64,000 nucleotides of DNA from Vitrella brassicaformis CCMP3155 (lineage: Eukaryota > Protista > Chromerida), in assembly GCA_001179505.1 (NCBI GenBank), contig CDMY01000908.1, forward strand, positions 1 through 64,000. The letters are read 5' to 3'. Every line of letters starts with the position of its first letter. The first letter of the stretch is position 1. Positions 43,771 through 56,825 of the stretch are shown here, piece after piece. The position numbers and the translations under genes are program-made. The notes under the pieces are model-generated. The model did no database searches. It was not told where the DNA came from and saw only the letters and a program-made list of their open reading frames with translations.

Positions 43771-44229
43771 CTGACGATGCTCATCTGACGCACACTTCAG
43801 CAGTCCTGCTCAAGATGAGTAGCGCACAGGTCGATCAATGAACAGATTGCGCTCAACTCTGTGGGTCAGCCGTCTTCATGACGATGGCTCTGTCTGTCTG
43901 ACTGTCTGTCTGTCTGTCCGTCTGTCAGTTCTGCACGTCACACGCCTCAGCCTGCCCGCCCGCATCAGGCACCGAATGACTTTGCATCATCAGTCAGTGC
44001 CGGATGAGCCATTCAAGCTGAAAGCGAGCACCGCACAGTGGACAGACACATCAAGGCGAGAAAGAAGGCAAGACGCCACACACAACACGAGACCTCACTG
44101 ACCTCTCTGTCTGTCTGTTTGCCTGTCTGTCTGCCTGTCTGTCTGCGGGCACATGTTTAACGACGGTCGGTGGCATCATCACATATCACACAGAAGGCAC
44201 GGCCCGTCATGTGCAGCTTGAGCAGCTAG

Positions 44230-46531
44230 CTAGGACACATAGACCTTCTGGAAGGACTTGATGGGATATGACTCACGGCTCCGCGGACACTGCACACGCC
44301 CGCCAGACACACCATAGATGCCACTTAAGGGTATTTCCAGCTCCCGGCTAACCTCGACGTAGCCATTGGTCGACTGAGCTGCCAGGGCCTCAATCGCCTG
44401 CAACACACACACACACACACACACAACCACAGCACACATTCAGCACACTGCCTGCCAGCATCATGTGTGTGTGTGTGTGTGTTTGCCGCTCACCGAGGTG
44501 GCGTACACAAACCCGGCCGGCGACGCCAGTGGAGGATCGTTCTCAGCCTGACAACCATCACACAACAAGTGTTCACACAACAAGTGTTCACAAGAACACA
44601 TGCCTCTCCTCTCCCCCTCCCTCTGCTCACGATGGGTTCTCCAGTGATGCCGCAGACGAGTGTGCTCTGGACGTGGTGGGGTGCTGGGACGTCCTTGAGG
44701 TACTGTGTCCACCCCGGGTCGCACGTAGGGCATGTGACGGAGCGGTGCTCCTCACACAGGGGGGACTTCATGGCGAAGAAGCCCGCCTGCAGGAGGATCT
44801 CCAGGAGGGGCTTGGGGGGGAAGCCGTAGAGCTGAGAACACTGCACACACCGAAACAAAGAGATACACATTCAATGTGCGTATCAATGGGTTTTGTCCGT
44901 GTGGTGTGGGTGGCTGACGGCTTCATTGAAGAGAGAGGTGAGCAGGTCCCACCGAGAGTCCTCCATCAGCCGCTGACACGCCACGCCATGGACACACACA
45001 CGTGATTTCGTGAGTGAGTGAGTGTTGGCGCGTGTGCATTGTCTGTTTATCCCCCCCTGGGCATGGCATCACTCCCTCCCTGGCTGGCTGACCATGTATT
45101 CGTTTGGCAGCTTGTCAGTGCCGATGTTGACGAAAGCCAACATGGCCATGATCTTGCGCAGCTCAGCGCAACCCTCTGAACCAACCATCCAGACAACGCC
45201 ATCACAAAACGCATGTCATGTGATGTGCCTCCGTCTCGTCAGGCTGCATGAGATTGTGTGTGTACTTTCATTGCTGTGCATTCCCTCCCTGACCGACCGA
45301 TGTCTGATGGATTGAGATTCTCGCGCACATATTTGACGGCCTGGCCACACACACACACAGAGTCAGAAGGGCAACATTTCAGAGCGCATGTCGTTTCCCT
45401 CCCTCCCTCCGCCCCCTCACCTCTTGTGCTTTCTTGTCTGCCATGAGCCCAATGACGTGCTGCAGATGCAGCTGCGTCTCGAAGGACGACTGCACAACAC
45501 AACACACCGCACCAGACGACACACACGATGCACACGCAGCCGTTGCAGACAGTCATCTATCTGTGTGTGGTGTGGTGTGGTGTGGTGCCTGCAGTTTCTT
45601 GAGCCTCGATTTGTTGGCGGTGCACCACTCGAGGGCCACGGCGGTCTCGTGCCGCTGGAGGCTCTGCAGCACCTCGTTGGCCTGACGGAACACCTCCTCG
45701 TCCACCATGTCCTGACACGCACAACAAACACACACCATGCTCACAATACGTAAGGCACACACACACAGCTCTCCCTCCCTCCCTCCCTCTGTGTGCCTGT
45801 TTGCCTGCCTCTCTGCGTCGCTAACCCACCTCCAGATCCGCCGCCTCCTTGAGTGCGTCCGCCGTCTTGGTGAGCCCCCTCCTGGCGAGGTAGTCATAGA
45901 CCATCCTGTCGACCTTGCGGGCGTAGGTGTCGAAGGAGAAGTCCCTCTGCCACCCAGCCAAAGTGTGTGGGCCCAGGTGGCCCACGGGGATGGCCGGCTC
46001 CTCCTGCAGAGTCCGCAGCCGCTTCTGGCAACGCGACACGTACATGTCTGCTTCCTGGGAGGCTTCTTCCACCTAGTGGACACACACACCCATACACACA
46101 GAGAGAGAGGGACGGAGAGATCAAGGAAGGGATGGCCATGCCATGTATGAGTGTGTGTGACACACACGCACACACAGCCATACACACACACAGGGAGGTC
46201 CATGCCATGCCTACCTACCTACCTTGTTTTTGAGGTTTTGCAGCTTGTTGATGAGTCTGTCCATCCGGGTGAGGCACTCATCCCTGGCCCCCTCGGAGCA
46301 GGACCTCCCGATGTAGGTGACGGTGGCGCCCACCTCCTTCTCGACCTGCTTCTGCAGATTGCGAAAGGCCTTCATCAGACACTCGTAAGGCACCTTGATG
46401 AAGGCGTACTCGTAAGCCGGCACCTCGGCCGACGGAGAAGTGGGTGCACTGCCGGCACTGCCAGCGCTCCCATCTGTAGCAGCTGACGAGCGGCGCTGGG
46501 CTGCGGCTTCGCCAGTGGCACCGTTGTTCAT
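44230..46531 (-). CDS. MAEA: MAEA/EMP/Fyv10 (Gid9) subunit of the CTLH/GID E3 ligase
   Basis: FIKVPYECLMKAFRNLQKQVEKE, LisH DRMVYDYLARRGLTKTADAL, CTLH SLQRHETAVALEWCTANKSRLKK, CRA LYGFPPKPLLEILLQAGFFAMKSPLC, CPTC, and degenerate RING HHVQSTLVCGITGE..NDPP..G.VY..CPRS..KVYVS*. Confidence 0.93.
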
Positions 46532-46922
46532 GCTGGGTGTTGCCGAGTGTGCTGTGCTTGTCAATCCGCTGTCTTGGCGCGTGCAGGGGCGGTCTTGTCC
46601 CTTCTTCCTCTTCCTCTTCTTCCCTTTTTGCACCGGGGGGAGCTTCCCTTTTTTCCGCGAGCTGCGGGGAAGTCTGCGAGCTTAGCTCCAGGGAACCAAA
46701 CAGAAAAGCGAATTAGCAGGGTTGCCACCTTCATCGCCTGGCTTGATTCCCTTCCCATCCAGCGAACTCATTCATCCCGACTTCGGCAAACGTCGGCCGC
46801 CCTGCCCTCCACTGTGATGCCCATCGCCCTCCCTACTGTCGAACCACCGCCCAGGCGTCCCCTTAATTGATCCCCCTGCATTGCATTCATCGGAGAGCGA
46901 TAAAGTAAGTCGCGAAGTCGTG

Positions 46923-49574
46923 ATGGCAGCGAGCGCCAAGGCGGCCCAGGGCCGTGGGTTCGAGGTGGGTGGTCTGTGTCTGGCCAACGGCAAGCCGGCC
47001 ATCCTGCGATTCAAGGGCGAGGCGCGATTCGGGGCGGGTGCGCGGAATACATACAGAGGAAATGCAACCAAGCATTCATCTGCCATTCATCGTGTCAGTC
47101 AGGGCACTCACTCTCTCTGTGTGTGTGTGCTGCCTGCGGTATTCAGGTGTTTGGTATGGTGTTGAGTTCATCGATAAGGCCCTCGGCAAGAACGATGGGG
47201 CCGTGCAGGTAGGTGAGGGAGGAGGTGGGGGAAAGCAGAGAGAGGAAGAGATAGATTGCTGCCTGGCCGCGATGTGCGTCATCATCCTGCACAGGGATTC
47301 CGGTATTTTTCTTGCCCTCCCAACCACGGCCTCTTTGTGCGCGAGAGCGCACTCAAGCCTTACTCAGGCACACACACACGCGCCCCAACAGAGAGAGATG
47401 CACTCCATCACTCGACCCTCTCTCTCTCTCTCTCTCTGTCCAGACCAGGAGAAAGCTGCCGTGGCCATCCAGAGCCTCGCTCGTGGCTCCAAGGCCCGCA
47501 AGAAGGCCAAGCAGGACATGGCCCTCCACGCATGGACGCAACTCGAAAACAACGAGGAGAGCGAGTTCCACGTCAACAACCGAGACGTCGCCTCGCAGGT
47601 CACACGGGAGATACGGCGGAAGTATGGGGCGGGTGAGGAGCCCAAGGCGCTGCTCCAGACGGCCACGCAACGGCGGCTGAGCAGGAGTGTCTATGGCACC
47701 ACCCCGAGGGCCAGCATCTCGGAGGCGGCACTGATGGCCGAGCAGATCCCTGACAGCTACACGGTCGGTCGGAGGGTGTGTGGGTGTGCTGGCGGGAGAG
47801 AAGGGCAGAGGTCTGTCGTGGTGTGTGTGTGTGTGTGTGTATGGGTGTGTGTAGGGTCCCCGTATTGACTGGCCGATAACATGGGACATGTGCCATCGGA
47901 TGGTGCGGCACTACATTGAGAGTCCCGACGTGATTCTGCACAGGTAGGTACCCACCACACCCCTCCCCCCCTCCCACCCTTTGTGTGTCGACACCATGAC
48001 ATGTGTGCAGACGGTATGCGTGGGAGCTGCTGTGCGGCTTCGAAGACCAGCTCGAGGACACCGTGCCCAACGCCGTGCGGCACTTCACCATCCCCAAGGA
48101 GAGCGGCGCGAGGTTGCTCCTGTGTGGGGATGTGCACGGGCAGCTGGCCGACGTGCTCTTCCTGTTCTACAAATTCGGATACCCCTCACCCAACAATGTG
48201 TACGCAGAGGGACAGGGAGAGGCGTGGATGGATGGATGGTGTGTGTGTGTTGGGTGTCAGGTATTTGTTCAACGGCGACCTGTGTGACCGCGGGATGTAC
48301 GCCACGGAGATCCTGCTGCTCATCTGTGCCTTCAACCTCTTGCACCCGGGATGTGTCCTCGTCAACAGAGGTAGGTAACACACACCACCACACACCACCA
48401 CATGCGCACATACAAGGTTGCAAGGCATGTGTGTTGTGTTGTTCGTTTCTTTGCAGGCAACCACGAGAGCACCGACATGAACGAGGTCTATGGCTTCGCT
48501 CTGGAGGTGCGGCAGAAGTACGGCGGGCTGATCTTCCAGAAGTTCCAGGACATATTCCACCTCCTCCCTCTCTGCACCATCATCGATGGTCAGCCAGTCG
48601 AGTGAGGAAGGACCCCTCATCCCTTCAGCGTCTTTTGTGCATCACTGCCTGCCTCCGTGTGTGTGTGTGTGTGTGTGTGTCAGATCGGATCTTCTGCGTG
48701 CACGCCGGCCTCTGTCGGCGCGACGGCATCTCCCTCTTGCACCTCAACGCCGTGGACCGGTACCGCCCCTGCCCCGACAACCCGGTGTCCTTCCAGGACA
48801 CGGTCATGTTCGACCTGCTGTGGTCGGACCCCCAGCCCCACTACGGCATCGGGCGGTCCACACGGGGGCCCGACTGCATCGTGTATGGGCCGGATATTAC
48901 TGACCGGTTTCTGGCGAGGAACAAATTGGAGGTCTGCATCCGCTCTCATGAGGTGAGGTGAGGTGGGTGCTCGGGGGGGATGGGTGGGTGGGTGGGTGGC
49001 TCTCTCTCTTTCTTTCTGAATGTGCGGTTTGGTTGTGCCATTGTGTGTGTGTGTGTGTGTTTGTGTGGTTGTGCAGGTGCCATCTACGGGCAGGGGGTTT
49101 GAGGTGCAGCACCAGGGCAAGTGCGTGACGGTCTTCTCGGCATCAAACTACTGCGGCGCATCCAACAACTATGGCGGAGTGGTAATATATGTAATCAGCC
49201 CCACCTTACCACCTTCTATGCGTGTGTGTGTATGTGGGTGCGTGTGTGTCGGCGTGCAGATCCTCTTTCAGTCCGACCTCTCCTTTGAGATTCAGGAGTA
49301 CTGGGCGCCCACCATCGACCAGCTCAGAGAAATCGTCAAGGAGTCCGACCAGGTCAGCCTCCACACCCACACACACACTCATGCCGTGGCGCCTATCTGT
49401 GTGTGTGTGTGTGTGTGTGGTGGTGGTGTGCAGGTGTCAGGGAAAGTGTATGACATGGCCACGAGGCTGAAGAGAGCCGAGAAGAGACGATCGACGTTCA
49501 TACTCGAAGTGAGTGCGTGAGTGCTCAGTTCGTTGCGCGACCTCTGGTCCCTCTCCCTCGCTCCCTCTCGCTCC

Positions 49575-49607
<33 letters not shown>

Positions 49608-51199
49608 TGTGTGATAGAATGCTGCCGAGAGGATGGCCGGCGACGTGATCGAGAAGCTCAAGAAACTCATATGCGAGAAGAAACAGGTGCAGACACACAC
49701 ACGCATACGCTGGCTTACCGACACACGCGCCTGTGCAGGATTTGTGGTGGTGGTTCTGGTCGGTGGATGAGAACAAGGAGGGCAAGATAACTGCAAACCT
49801 ATGGAGGTGCTGCACAGCCCACCGATAGATAGATGGACACACACACGCTCAGGTGCTGCCATTGCCCCCCTCCTGGTGCCTTCTGCTGCTCGTGACAGAG
49901 AGGCGTGCAACGACGTGCTGGGCGACAGCCTGCCGTGGGTCTTCCTGCAGAAAGAACTCAATGTACCGCGACCACACACACCAAACCCTCCCCCTCCCCC
50001 TCCCCCACACCACACACAGCCGCACTCACAAGACGACGCAGTGCAGCCGTGAGTGTGTGTGTGTTTTGGTGTCATTGATTGTCAGGTGGTGGATAGTGAT
50101 GGTATGGTCGACTACGAGAGGTTCCTGCGTCGGTTCCGTGTTGAGTTTAAGGGCGACAGACTCAGATCGGAGAAGTGGAAAAGGGACACCGTTCAACAGG
50201 TATGTGCACACGCGTGCACCCCAACCCCCCTCCACTCTCTCACACACACACACACGAGGGAGCCATCCATTCCATGAGTGTCCGTCACGTGTGTGTCATG
50301 TTATGCAGATCTTTGAGGCGATCTTGATGTGTGATTTAAGCCTTCGGGAGACCCTCCTCCTCTTCGACAGAAACTCAGATGGAACCGTAAGTGAAGTAAA
50401 GTAACCCTTCCTTCCACACCTCTCCCCGCACACCACATGCACGCACGCCCGCACCTGTCCGTCGGCCCACGGATATATATCACTCACGACAGGTGTCATT
50501 TCGCGAGTTCCGTGAGTTCATCAGCACCTTTTGCCCGGGCCTGACTGAGCCTCAGGTGATGGCTTTGATGCGCACCATCACCGCTGACCACCTCGCCAAG
50601 GGAGACGCCTCCGGACGGGTGCACGTCGCTGCGTTCCTCGCACGGTAGCTGGTCGATCGATGGGAGGGAGGGTGTGGGGGGCTGTCTGTGTGTCTGTGTG
50701 GGGGCCGAGTCAAGCAGACAGACAGACGAGAAAATGGCTGTGTTGTTATGTGCAGGTTTGAGGTGACCTACAACGCAAGCATAGCCAAGAAGTGAGCAGC
50801 CAACCACCGGCATGTGACACCCCACGCCCAGCAGAGCAGATGGCCCCCTGCTGTTGCCGCTGTTGTCTGTCTGTGTGGTGTGGGTGGGTTTGTTAGGTAC
50901 ACGGAGCCGTGGATAGAGAAGGCGCTCAAGTCGATCGGCCGTCTGATCCGCACCGAGAGCCCCGACGACAGCCTCAAAAGGCTGGGCATCACTGGCAGCC
51001 CAGACATGTCACCTGCCAGCAGCAAAGGGGGAGGGGGACTCCTGGCGCCGCCCAAGGATCCACTCGAGCACATAAGACGCCGGTCCTCCTTGATGCGGGC
51101 CTTCACACTCATGGACAAATTCCAGGTGGGCAGGGAGGGAGGGAGGGGCTGAGGGGCTGGTTGCGACAGGGCTGGGCTGTATCTCTCTCTCTGTCCGTC

Positions 51200-51230
<31 letters not shown>

Positions 51231-52650
51231 CTGTGTGTGCAGCAAAGTGACAAGAAGGGCGAAGGTGGGCACAAGAAGATGCGATCGCATGTGTGTGTGC
51301 GTGTCTGTCTGTATCTGTGTGTCCACACACACATAAGGTTTCCTGTCGTACGATGACTTCATCGTGGCGCTGCGTGGGCTGCCCCTGAAGGATTGCAAAA
51401 AGGACGTCGGCTTCGAGCTCACCGACCAGCACCTCAGAAAGGCACGCCTCATACATCCAGACACACACACACACACACACACACGTGTGAAGAGGCGTAC
51501 AGTGGTGTGTGTGACCTTGTGATGGCCATGCAGCTGGCCGAGGTGATAGATGTGGTGGGCAACGGGCGCATCAACTACCTCGAATTTCTCAGAGCCTTCC
51601 AAGGTCACGTCACACACGCACGCACGAGAAATGATGGGTGGCATGGTGGCCATGGCCTTCATCATGTGCTGTCCGTGTGTGTATGTGTGCCTGCCTGCAG
51701 TGGTGGATCACAGCAAGCAGGCAGCACACCAGGCCGGCGACGAGGTCAGTCGAGTCGAGTCGAGTCGGCGCCACACCACACCAGACACAGATACCAGCCA
51801 GCCAGCACAGAGATCGATGGATCGAGTGCTTTGTGTCTGTCGGTCGGTCAGATCTGGGAGCAGATATGCACCACCATCTTCAAGCACGCGCCGACACTTC
51901 GGTACGGTGCACTCTCTGCACACAGACAGACAGACACACACACACACACATGGCCACAAGACGGCCCTGGCGACCTCTCCGTGTGAACCACTCACTGTGG
52001 ATTGGATCGGTCAGGCGTGCACTGCAGCAGTTTGACCCCGACTACACGGGATATGTCAAGACCAAAGACCTGCAGGCAACCACAGGGAGAGGGCGGAGGG
52101 CAGTGCAGTGGGTGGGAATCAATCGTGAGGGAGGCCTTTCTGTGCGTGTGTGCCTGGTCAGAAAGCGCTCGAGACGCTCAACAACGTCCTCTCACGAACA
52201 GAGTGAGTGACTTAGCTAGCGAGGCAGCCGGCCATGTAGTCAGTCAGTCAATCAATGCGGTCATTGCCTGCCGAATCCCTCTTCGTGCGTGCGTGCCTGC
52301 GTGTGTGTCGTGTCTTCAGGGCCCCCCTGACAGACGAGCAGATCAACCTCCTCGTTGAAACCCTCGAGAAAGACAGCGACGTAAGTAATATCACCACCAT
52401 CACCACCAGCACAGCACCACAGAGCCCCCAATGTGTTGTGTGTATGGTATTGTGGTTTCTGTCTGTGGCATCCATCCAGACGCTGTGCTACGACGTCTTG
52501 CTGGACTCGTTTGTGGTGGTCGATTGCGAGGCCCCCCAACAGCAGCAAGGGGGGCAGTCCCCCACAGCGACGCCCGGGATCTCCGCCAGCAAACACCCAA
52601 AGGTCAACGTGGAACCTGATACAGATGTCGTCATGGCCGACGTGGCGTGA
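46923..52650 (+). CDS. PPEF: PPEF/PP7-family Ser/Thr phosphatase with N-terminal CAP-Gly domain, IQ motif and multiple EF-hands
   Basis: CAP-Gly GEARFGAG|[20 protein letters not shown]|[16 protein letters not shown] and [21 protein letters not shown] motifs [42 protein letters not shown] and [12 protein letters not shown]-hands FDRNSDGT|[25 protein letters not shown]|GFLSYDDF and [14 protein letters not shown]. Stop at 52648-52650. Confidence 0.93.
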
Positions 52651-53120
52651 TGTGATTCCATGCGATGTGTATCTGGTGTCCATGCCATGCCATGCGTGTG
52701 GCATGCGCATTTACTTGTCACTCTCTCTCACTCTCTTCTGGCTGCCTGCCTGCCTGCCTGACGGACTGTGTGGGTGGATGGGTGAGTGAGTGTTTCGAGT
52801 GGCGTTTTGGTGTACAGACAGAGAGTGCCGTGTGTATCACTGGCTACTCCCTCCCTCCCTCCTTGCTGTGCTGCCTTTCTTTGGTGGTTGGGTGCGTGCA
52901 GGTGGCCAAGCCCGTGCGGCCCGCCGCATCCCCAGCCACACAAGCCGCGAGAGGCCGAACATAAACAACCAACCAACTGACTGGCTGATACGATCGACTG
53001 ACTCCACTACCTGCAGGCAGACAGACAGACATACAGATAGTCACTCACGGGCACATACACACACACAACACACTTCTTGTTTGGTCGGTTGGTTGGTTGG
53101 TTGGTTTGACTTTGTGCCCT

Positions 53121-53420: not shown

Positions 53421-53433
53421 CCCTCCCCCCGGC

Positions 53434-56400
53434 ATGGGTCAGCCCACCACCACCACTCGCCCCGTTTTACAGCCGCTGGACACCAAGGACTGGACGAAGG
53501 GTCTGGTGGCATCGCCGCCGGAGCCCCCCCACCCGATGCTGATGTCTACCCAGATCACCACACCCCAGGGGTACACGTACTCGTCGATGATCCGCGGTGC
53601 GCTGCCGCCGGTGCTGGACAACAGCCAGCTGCAGATCTTCAGAGTGCACCGCTGCTCCAGGCTCAAGATGGGCGGCGGCGTCTGCCACTTCGGCGACAGA
53701 TGCCAGTTCAGCCACGACCCGACTTGGAGGTCAGTCAGCACACTGACTGCTCACCACACACCACACACACGCACAGAGTTGTGTTGTGTGTGTCTGTGTG
53801 GCAGGCGTCGTCCTCCGTTGTTTCCTCGGTGCAACAAGTTGCGCTACGTGAGCCTGCTGTGCCCGAAGGTGCAGATGAAGCAGGGGACCATCCTGCGCAG
53901 CGACTGCGAGGCCGGGGAGGACTGCCTCTTCGCCCACTCGATGGAGGAGATCATGTACCACCCCGAGTTCTACAAGACGCGACTCTGCCCCGACCTATTC
54001 CCCGAGGGAAACCTCTCTGGCAGAACTGAAGCACCCAGAGGATGCGCCAGGTAGGGAAACAAACAAGGAAAGTGTCGATATAGAAAGTGTCGATATATCG
54101 ACACACATGACATCTGATCTGTCCATCCATCCATCCATGCACCTGTGTGTCTGCGTGTGTGGTCCACCGTATGTGATGTGATGTGTAGGTACTACTGTGC
54201 GTTTGCGCACACTCTTCAGGAGCTGCGCGACCGTCCCCAGTACGAGCAGCCTGACGGCTTCGACATGGCCCTCATGATCGACACCATCGTCAAGCGACTC
54301 AACACCGACATGATCACCGGCTCACCTGCCGCACTCCCCAACGCATCACAGGGCCTCCTCGACCACATGCGCCAGCTCTGCGAGGCGGGCACTCCAGGCG
54401 CTGCTGCCATTGGTGGTGCCCGTGGCGTGCCGCCCACTCCGGCCCGCACCGATCACACCAGCCCGGCGGTGAGCAGCCACAGCCCCTCCAGCATGGCACC
54501 CAAGCACATACTCGCGCGGCAGGGGACGGCAGCAGCTGGGGGTGGGGCAGGCATCTCACCCCTCTCACAGCAAGGCGTGGCTGCGGCGCTGCTGGCCGCA
54601 CAGCAGCAGGCTGGTGCCGACGCAGCCGCCGCGGCACCGGCGGCGTACCGGGCGGCCACCATGCCGGTGGGTGCGCATCAGCTGGCCGTGGTGGGGGGCA
54701 ATGGTGAAGAGCACAAGAGCATCTCGAGTGACGAGTACGAGGAGGATGACCTGTTGAAGCTGCTGGGCAAGCAGACCTCCCGCCAGAGGTTCTCCAAGGG
54801 CAGTACCGTGCCCGTCATCCCATCGGCCGCCATGTCCTTCGCCTCCGTCGCATCCAGCACACCTGCACCCACACCCAAGAACGGGGGGCAACCACCACCA
54901 CTGCCGCAGCAACAGCCACAGCAGCTGCTTGTGGCGCAGCTGCCACAGCAACAACAGCAGCAGCAGCCCCACGGGCAGCTGCACGCGCCCCTGTCGGCCC
55001 CGCCGCCCCCACCGGCGGGGCAGATTGTGGGCCCATCCCTGACGCCATACGAGAGGACATCCCCATCCAGCACACACCAGCCGCCGCCGCCGCCCCCGCC
55101 GCCGCCGCCTGGTTCCGAGGAGGGCGGCAAGGAGCTGCAGTCCTTCTGGACGATTGAGGAGGCGTCTCAGCTTCCCGAGAACCTCGAGCCGCTCGAGCCC
55201 GTCGAATCCACAGACGAACACAAGGAGGGAGGGCAGCAACAGGAGGACCAGCAGCAGCAGCAGGAGGGTGAGCTCCCGGACATCGGGCAGATCCGTGAGT
55301 GGCTCATGAGCTACGCCAACAGGAACCCGGCAGTGACGCAGCTGCTGGCCTCGGCTGGCTTGGGGGGCGAGAGGGACATACCCACACCAGCCTACGCTGC
55401 GCCGGCGGTGCCGTCTCCCCGGTCGGTGCCGCATCCCTTCCCGCCCTCGTCTGCTCGGTCTGACCCCGACCCACACTCACCCACCCTGCTCAACGGGGAC
55501 CACACCCGCACCGGCAGCGGCACCGTCACAGGCCAGTCGCTGCCGGCGGCCTCTCAGTCAGTGACGTCCGAGTCGCCCGAGCTGCTGTACAAGAGCCGNN
55601 NNNNNNNNNNNNNNNNNNNNNNNNNNNNNNNNNNNNNNNNNNNNNNNNNNNNNNNNNNNNNNNNNNNNNNNNNNNNNNNNNNNNNNNNNNNNNNNNNNNN
55701 NNNNNNNNNNNNNNNNNNNNNNNNNNNNNNNNNNNNNNNNNNNNNNNNNNNNNNNNNNNNNNNNNNNNNNNNNNNNNNNNNNNNNNNNNNNNNNNNNNNN
55801 NNNNNNNNNNNNNNNNNNNNNNNNNNNNNNNNNNNNNNNNNNNNNNNNNNNNNNNNNNNNNNNNNNNNNNNNNNNNNNNNNNNNNNNNNNNNNNNNNNCT
55901 GGGCAAGCAGACCTCCCGCCAGAGGTTCTCCAAGGGCAGTACCGTGCCCGTCATCCCATCGGCCGCCATGTCCTTCGCCTCCGTCGCATCCAGCACACCT
56001 GCACCCACACCCAAGAACGGGGGGCAACCACCACCACTGCCGCAGCAACAGCCACAGCAGCTGCTTGTGGCGCAGCTGCCACAGCAACAACAGCAGCAGC
56101 AGCCCCACGGGCAGCTGCACGCGCCCCTGTCGGCCCCGCCGCCCCCACCGGCGGGGCAGATTGTGGGCCCATCCCTGACGCCATACGAGAGGACATCCCC
56201 ATCCAGCACACACCAGCCGCCGCCGCCGCCCCCGCCGCCGCCGCCTGGTTCCGAGGAGGGCGGCAAGGAGCTGCAGTCCTTCTGGACGATTGAGGAGGCG
56301 TCTCAGCTTCCCGAGAACCTCGAGCCGCTCGAGCCCGTCGAATCCACAGACGAACACAAGGAGGGAGGGCAGCAACAGGAGGACCAGCAGCAGCAGCAGG

Positions 56401-56825
56401 AGGGTGAGCTCCCGGACATCGGGCAGATCCGTGAGTGGCTCATGAGCTACGCCAACAGGAACCCGGCAGTGACGCAGCTGCTGGCCTCGGCTGGCTTGGG
56501 GGGCGAGAGGGACATACCCACACCAGCCTACGCTGCGCCGGCGGTGCCGTCTCCCCGGTCGGTGCCGCATCCCTTCCCGCCCTCGTCTGCTCGGTCTGAC
56601 CCCGACCCACACTCACCCACCCTGCTCAACGGGGACCACACCCGCACCGGCAGCGGCACCGTCACAGGCCAGTCGCTGCCGGCGGCCTCTCAGTCAGTGA
56701 CGTCCGAGTCGCCCGAGCTGCTGTACAAGAGCCGCCACTACGAGGAGAATGTGCACGGCATACCACCCCTGGGCGAAGAGCGGGAGGACTCGCCATGCGG
56801 CTCCAAGACCTCACACGAGTCATGA
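53434..56825 (+). CDS. Unkempt/TZF-like tandem CCCH zinc-finger RNA-binding protein with Pro/Gln-rich disordered tail
   Basis: FRVHRC..CHFGDRCQFSH, W|RRRPP..LLCP..CEAGEDCLFAHSMEEIMYHPEFYKTRLC..GCAR|YYCAFAHTLQELR. After collapsing the duplicate around the gap the frame runs to TGA at 56823-56825. The start may lie in the upstream gap. Confidence 0.85.
54763..56734. repeat. 836-bp exact direct duplicate flanking a 300-N gap (54763-55598 = 55899-56734); probable scaffolding artefact
   Basis: The sequence after the gap restarts at ctgggcaagcagacctcc and repeats without visible mismatch to ctgtacaagagccg. Gap at 55599-55898. Confidence 0.9.

Follow-up and report, generated by a model that had tools for sequence, protein, structure and literature searches.

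The animal phosphatases PPEF1 and PPEF2 and Drosophila RdgC are built of an IQ motif, a PPP catalytic domain and C-terminal EF-hands only. None of them is known to carry a CAP-Gly domain before the IQ motif. That PPEF proteins are widespread among eukaryotes was documented by Kerk et al. (2021, PMC8249667). PfPP7 (PF3D7_1423300) depends on Ca2+, interacts with calmodulin and CDPK1 and is required for early ring development; its published domain cartoon shows IQ, phosphatase and EF-hands only (PMC11559042). TgPP7 was found at the apical pole with ISP1, and its deletion lowers invasion and virulence (Liang et al. 2022, PMC8785970). The same Toxoplasma gene was described as the apical cap protein AC6, which is detergent-soluble and has the Plasmodium ortholog 1423300 (Chen et al. 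2015, PMC4337574). Because of this solubility, TgPP7/AC6 is not firmly cytoskeletal. A CAP-Gly domain of PP7, located N-terminal to the calmodulin-binding motif, is stated in a passage of Liang et al. (2022, PMC8785970), which cites Andreeva and Kutuzov (2009).

We investigated a phosphatase gene in a window of 64,000 nucleotides (contig CDMY01000908.1 of Vitrella brassicaformis CCMP3155, positions 1 to 64,000). In an initial annotation, made from the letters alone, a CAP-Gly domain was described as fused to a PPEF/PP7 phosphatase, and this fusion was regarded as undescribed. The fusion is real, but the architecture is known for PP7-type PPEF in Apicomplexa and many other protists. With a probability of about 0.9, the gene is orthologous to apicomplexan PP7, a Ser/Thr phosphatase of the PPEF family regulated by Ca2+/calmodulin, with one gene and one mRNA giving a CAP-Gly/IQ/PPP/EF-hand product. 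The orthologs of the Vitrella protein are AC6/TGGT1_251850 in Toxoplasma and PF3D7_1423300 in Plasmodium. The IQ, PPP and C-terminal EF-hand plan is common to the Vitrella protein, animal PPEF1/PPEF2 and Drosophila RdgC.

Gene model and domain architecture

The following features were assigned to the phosphatase gene:

46923..52650, + strand: coding region of the PP7/PPEF-type phosphatase, 29 exons, 1021 aa (exon model)
46923..47037, + strand: exon 1, start codon and initial third of CAP-Gly (aa 1-39)
47147..47208, + strand: exon 2, middle of the CAP-Gly domain with GKNDG (aa 39-59); Pfam CAP_GLY profile positions 27-45, 21 bits
47295..47367, + strand: exon 3, last part of CAP-Gly (aa 60-84), with a GC donor behind it; CAP_GLY profile positions 46-64, 25.9 bits
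47368..47443, + strand: intron 3, GC..AG, 76 nt
47444..47763, + strand: exon 4, IQ motif (aa 86-106) and linker; Pfam IQ and IQxxxRGxxxR pattern
47855..49352, + strand: exons 5-11, PPP (Metallophos) catalytic domain (aa ~191-519); Pfam and core motifs
49739..52380, + strand: exons 14-28, EF-hand region; EF-hand_7, EF-hand_1 and EF-hand_6 matches, with loops and degenerate ones
51243-51264, + strand: microexon of 22 nt in the EF-hand region; letters present between the joints in all four RNA-like runs
52902..52964, + strand: alternative last coding exon, used after removal of intron 52603-52901 (1026-aa isoform)

The hand-built model starts with the ATG at 46923, ends with the TGA at 52648-52650 and forms a single open frame of 1021 codons with GT/GC-AG introns. 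A complete public transcript ORF of V. brassicaformis CCMP3155 (P0001, 1021 aa), retrieved by a query with exon 9 against a library of 1.84 billion representatives, agrees with it residue for residue. The gene had already been annotated in the genome (CEM36817.1 / A0A0G4H003; P0151, 1026 aa), and public data already contain its precomputed Pfam architecture. This annotation differs from P0001 only after aa 1007. An alternative 3' splice with removal of intron 52603-52901 exchanges the final 14 residues for 19 others and thus accounts for the 1021-aa ORF beside the 1026-aa annotation. A loose end of run X1 at 52604 continues with letters located at about 52904.

The sequence is that of a eukaryote: its introns are short, of the GT-AG type and often flanked by (TG)n tracts. 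In many introns of the phosphatase gene the splice sites are adjoined by (TG)n or (CA)n tracts. GC donors were observed in three of its 28 introns (47368, 51442 and 52076); one of these joints is printed (52072>52159, with the ends CA..GT), the other two come from record-length arithmetic.

In the full protein, CAP_GLY (PF01302) was detected at aa 22-78 with 67.5 bits at a cut-off of 26.5. The profile match of exon 3 begins exactly where that of exon 2 stops. The GKNDG motif lies at aa 52-56, and the stretch YFSC...NHGLFV is likewise encoded by exons 1-3. The CAP-Gly signature is whole in Vitrella (F36, W41, GKNDG, YF and GLFV), and G32, G43, E45, G56 and F64 are invariant across the family alignment. 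Against solved CAP-Gly domains, the first 110 residues matched CLIPR-59 (1.2e-15), Restin/CLIP-170 (1.4e-15) and dynactin-1 p150Glued (5e-14); E-values for the structures of CLIPR-59, CLIP-170/Restin, CLIP-115 and dynactin p150Glued ranged from 1e-15 to 1e-12. The fold signature and the GKNDG motif are common to these four proteins and the Vitrella protein. They are coiled-coil scaffolds or motor adaptors, whereas in the Vitrella protein a lone CAP-Gly stands at the N-terminus of an enzyme.

An IQ motif with the exact pattern IQxxxRGxxxR was found at aa 92-102, N-terminal to the catalytic domain. The Pfam IQ score was 21 bits for exon 4 alone (cut-off 20.3) and 17.2 bits in the full protein. 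Metallophos reached 95.1 bits at aa 254-454, and exon 9 alone also matched this family. The PPP core motifs are complete, with GDVHG at 259, GDLCDRG at 288, GNHE at 320, VHAG at 369, RG at 424 and RSHE at 450. For the full protein EF-hand_7 gave 94.5 bits in three stretches, and EF-hand_1 and EF-hand_6 also passed their cut-offs. At least four EF-like loops (aa 669, 817, 862 and 918), two of them fully canonical, follow C-terminal to the catalytic domain. Thus, the canonical CAP-Gly, the IQ motif, the complete PPP domain and the four or more EF-hand-like loops read from the letters in the initial annotation are all borne out by Pfam matches and motif positions.

Transcript evidence

None of the runs used is recorded as RNA. 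Contigs of X1, X2, X7 and X8, which belong to three studies, skip predicted introns with GT..AG ends, and hence these runs behave as RNA. Exon 1 is covered by RNA-like contigs at 46700/46815-47036. Record 8 of X7 (3868 nt) has pieces on 46700-47036 and 47447-47764 with 139 record letters between them; contig placement masks the CT repeat 47408-47446, and piece ends there are uninformative alone. The same 139 letters stand between exon 1 and exon 4 in record 9 of X8 (1770 nt). This number equals the last base of exon 1 (1), exon 2 (62), exon 3 (73) and the first bases of exon 4 (3). The 271 genomic letters skipped by X7 and X8, i.e. in two studies, equal introns 1-3 (109 + 86 + 76), so that the joints of these introns are obtained by length arithmetic, exact in two runs, rather than as printed joints. 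The X7 contig goes on through the catalytic and EF-hand exons as far as 52699. The linkage between the CAP-Gly exons and the phosphatase exons, for which RNA support had been asked in the initial annotation, is given by these contigs. The splice 47367>47444 predicted there is also retained: exon 3 joins exon 4 in frame at this place via a GC-AG intron. Together with the identical 1021-aa ORF, the RNA contigs show that all four elements (CAP-Gly, IQ, PPP and EF-hands) are joined in frame within a single spliced product, as had been proposed.

Relatives with the same architecture

Beyond the query, six of the ten best full-length representatives passed the Pfam cut-offs for CAP_GLY, Metallophos and EF-hand. 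These were Toxoplasma, Theileria, Ancora, Hemiselmis and two environmental clusters. Gefionella, Lacrimia and Euglena were added by a local HMM built on the N-terminal domain. The named taxa are:

Toxoplasma gondii (cluster includes Hammondia, Neospora and Besnoitia): CAP-Gly plus phosphatase architecture
Cardiosporidium: CAP-Gly architecture, weak
Theileria: CAP-Gly architecture, CAP-Gly degenerate
Ancora sagittata, gregarine: CAP-Gly architecture
Hemiselmis andersenii, cryptophyte: CAP-Gly architecture
Gefionella okellyi, malawimonad: CAP-Gly architecture
Lacrimia lanifica, diplonemid: CAP-Gly architecture
Euglena gracilis: CAP-Gly architecture

With the local HMM a CAP-Gly was detected in 21 of the best 150 representatives (one per cluster at ≤50% identity); among the 58 with at least 600 aa, 18 were positive. 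In many of the negative rows the N-terminal stretch before the catalytic domain is too short for such a domain, and these may be truncated models. A homologue query with aa 1-110 of the Vitrella protein recovered, apart from the protein itself, just unrelated CAP-Gly proteins (CLIP1, dynactin) and is too insensitive to gauge rarity among PPEF.

In a quick catalytic-domain tree, calculated without PP5, PP1 or PP2B as outgroups, Vitrella belongs to a group with SH-aLRT 98 together with Toxoplasma, Cardiosporidium, Ancora, Theileria and a Plasmodium protein that bears the name phosphatase 7. Three of the nine rows of this group are of unidentified origin. Members with CAP-Gly are spread over the entire tree. 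Such a pattern, in a tree without outgroup, fits an old fusion that may have been followed by losses.

The head of CAP-Gly and IQ is present in Alveolata, Cryptista, malawimonads, Euglenozoa and diplonemids. In all relatives inspected, 22-24 residues separate the G of the CAP-Gly GLF from the Q of the IQ motif. It is conceivable, though we hold it only tentatively, that this head was the original N-terminus of a PPEF lineage spanning the eukaryotes and was lost or eroded in other members, Plasmodium among them; the fixed spacing may then make docking to tubulin or EB switchable by Ca2+/calmodulin.

Toxoplasma gondii PP7/AC6 (TGGT1_251850; P0004, XP_018635096.1) has the same domain order as the Vitrella protein, i.e. 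CAP-Gly, IQ, Metallophos and EF-hands. The two proteins share 59% identity over the catalytic region and belong to the same SH-aLRT 98 clade. A mass of 117.4 kDa was calculated for P0004, compared with 117.32 kDa published for TGGT1_251850 (PMC8785970). The Toxoplasma CAP-Gly contains an insertion and reads GDNDG where Vitrella has GKNDG; the Vitrella copy is the more canonical one. Of the two proteins, Toxoplasma PP7/AC6 is the one with a known function and localisation.

Plasmodium PP7, represented by P. knowlesi (P0014), agrees with the Vitrella protein in the position of its IQ motif, also possesses the PPP core and EF-hands, and belongs to the same clade. For P0014 no CAP-Gly was detected by Pfam or by the local HMM. 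Residues 1-81 of P0014 align to the family CAP-Gly profile with an hhalign probability of 96% and E = 4e-9. Judged from this alignment, the N-terminus of P. knowlesi PP7 is a degenerate CAP-Gly relic, which is absent from the published PfPP7 scheme.

Discussion

The reading of one gene and one mRNA has to be weighed against a different arrangement of the same exons. The CAP-Gly exons could form a separate small gene or transcript, with the phosphatase starting at the ATG 47398 in intron 3. This ATG is in frame with exon 4 and no stop lies between them; moreover, the donor of intron 3 is a non-canonical GC, and the masked repeat deprives piece ends in this place of information on their own. Against this, the contigs with exon 1 and exon 4 from two runs of two studies hold exactly the length of exons 2 and 3, the complete 1021-aa ORF of the transcript assembly is identical to the model, and the junction of CAP-Gly and IQ recurs with conserved spacing in orthologs of many lineages. 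One contig with exon 1 and exon 4 reaches the 3' end, which shows that the CAP-Gly exons do not form a transcript of their own. Nor can exons 1-3 belong to the end of a plus-strand gene lying upstream, as the neighbour on that side is encoded on the opposite strand. We regard a split into two transcripts as highly improbable; a phosphatase starting at 47398 without CAP-Gly was rejected by the contig arithmetic together with the identical transcript ORF. With the single-transcript reading retained, the other question concerns novelty. A fusion that is new, lineage-specific and absent from other PPEF/PP7 proteins would agree with the animal PPEF/RdgC plan, which has IQ, PPP and EF-hands only. 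The PfPP7 cartoon, which is limited to the same three elements, also counts in its favour (PMC11559042). However, CAP_GLY, Metallophos and EF-hand occur together in the six relatives that passed the Pfam cut-offs, and the CAP-Gly of PP7 is in print, as the passage in PMC8785970 attests. The initial annotation had proposed an architecture search and a survey of PP7 proteins and had made its claim dependent on the architecture not being common among PPEF; the CAP-Gly was found in 21 of the 150 nearest representatives. A lineage-specific novelty has thus next to no probability left, even less than two transcripts. As the CAP-Gly of PP7 is already part of the literature, the finding of the fusion is correct, yet not new, and the claim that it is undescribed has to be given up.

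For the Vitrella PP7 ortholog the following mode of action can be proposed. By analogy with PfPP7, the only PP7 for which Ca2+-dependent activity and calmodulin binding have been demonstrated, the EF-hands and calmodulin bound to the IQ motif would make the phosphatase activity Ca2+-dependent. Through its CAP-Gly domain the enzyme would be anchored to acidic C-terminal tails of the EEY/F type, as in alpha-tubulin or EB-like proteins, or else to some other partner in the cortex. Docking might then place the phosphatase at a cytoskeletal compartment, for example an apical cap like that seen for TgPP7. From the intact CAP-Gly signature, delivery of the Vitrella phosphatase to microtubules appears plausible. 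The spacing of 22-24 residues between CAP-Gly and IQ in all relatives inspected points to a possible mutual influence of calmodulin binding and CAP-Gly docking, and a coupling of both would be a reasonable hypothesis on the basis of the aligned sequences.

The partner of the CAP-Gly could be a different one. It might bind a non-microtubule protein, such as one of the apical cap or IMC that ends in an acidic-aromatic sequence, or act in cis beside the IQ motif. Some CAP-Gly domains, e.g. that of CYLD, have non-tubulin partners, which counts for this alternative. The detergent-soluble TgPP7/AC6 is confined to the apical cap and not distributed along all subpellicular microtubules (PMC8785970, PMC4337574), and a degenerate CAP-Gly is nevertheless kept in Theileria and Plasmodium. 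The CAP-Gly of Vitrella, in contrast, is fully canonical and closest to those of the microtubule-binding proteins CLIPR-59, CLIP-170, CLIP-115 and p150Glued. A non-microtubule or cis role is possible but less likely than not. Since the CAP-Gly is degenerate in Theileria and Plasmodium and PP7 is still essential, EEY/F binding is not indispensable for every function of the family.

The remaining value of the locus is comparative. The free-living chromerid has a textbook CAP-Gly, whereas the domain is altered (Toxoplasma) or eroded (Theileria, Plasmodium) in the parasites. Because Vitrella keeps the textbook form, its protein is a good reagent for tests of binding by the PP7/AC6 CAP-Gly and of its gating by calmodulin. 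As modest leads we retain the wide distribution of PPEF proteins with a CAP-Gly, the degenerate remnant of this domain in Plasmodium PP7 and the constant distance from CAP-Gly to IQ.

Neighbouring genes and assembly

Upstream, at 44200-46560 on the minus strand, a multi-exon gene was observed that has a divergent promoter region in common with the phosphatase gene. The downstream neighbour at 53430-55600 on the plus strand looks like a CCCH zinc-finger gene and contains long low-complexity Q/P/A tracts. Within this downstream gene an exact 836-bp duplicate (54763-55598 and 55899-56734) flanks a scaffold gap of 300 N (55599-55898). Most likely, the duplicate is an artefact of gap closure or assembly and not a real tandem duplication.
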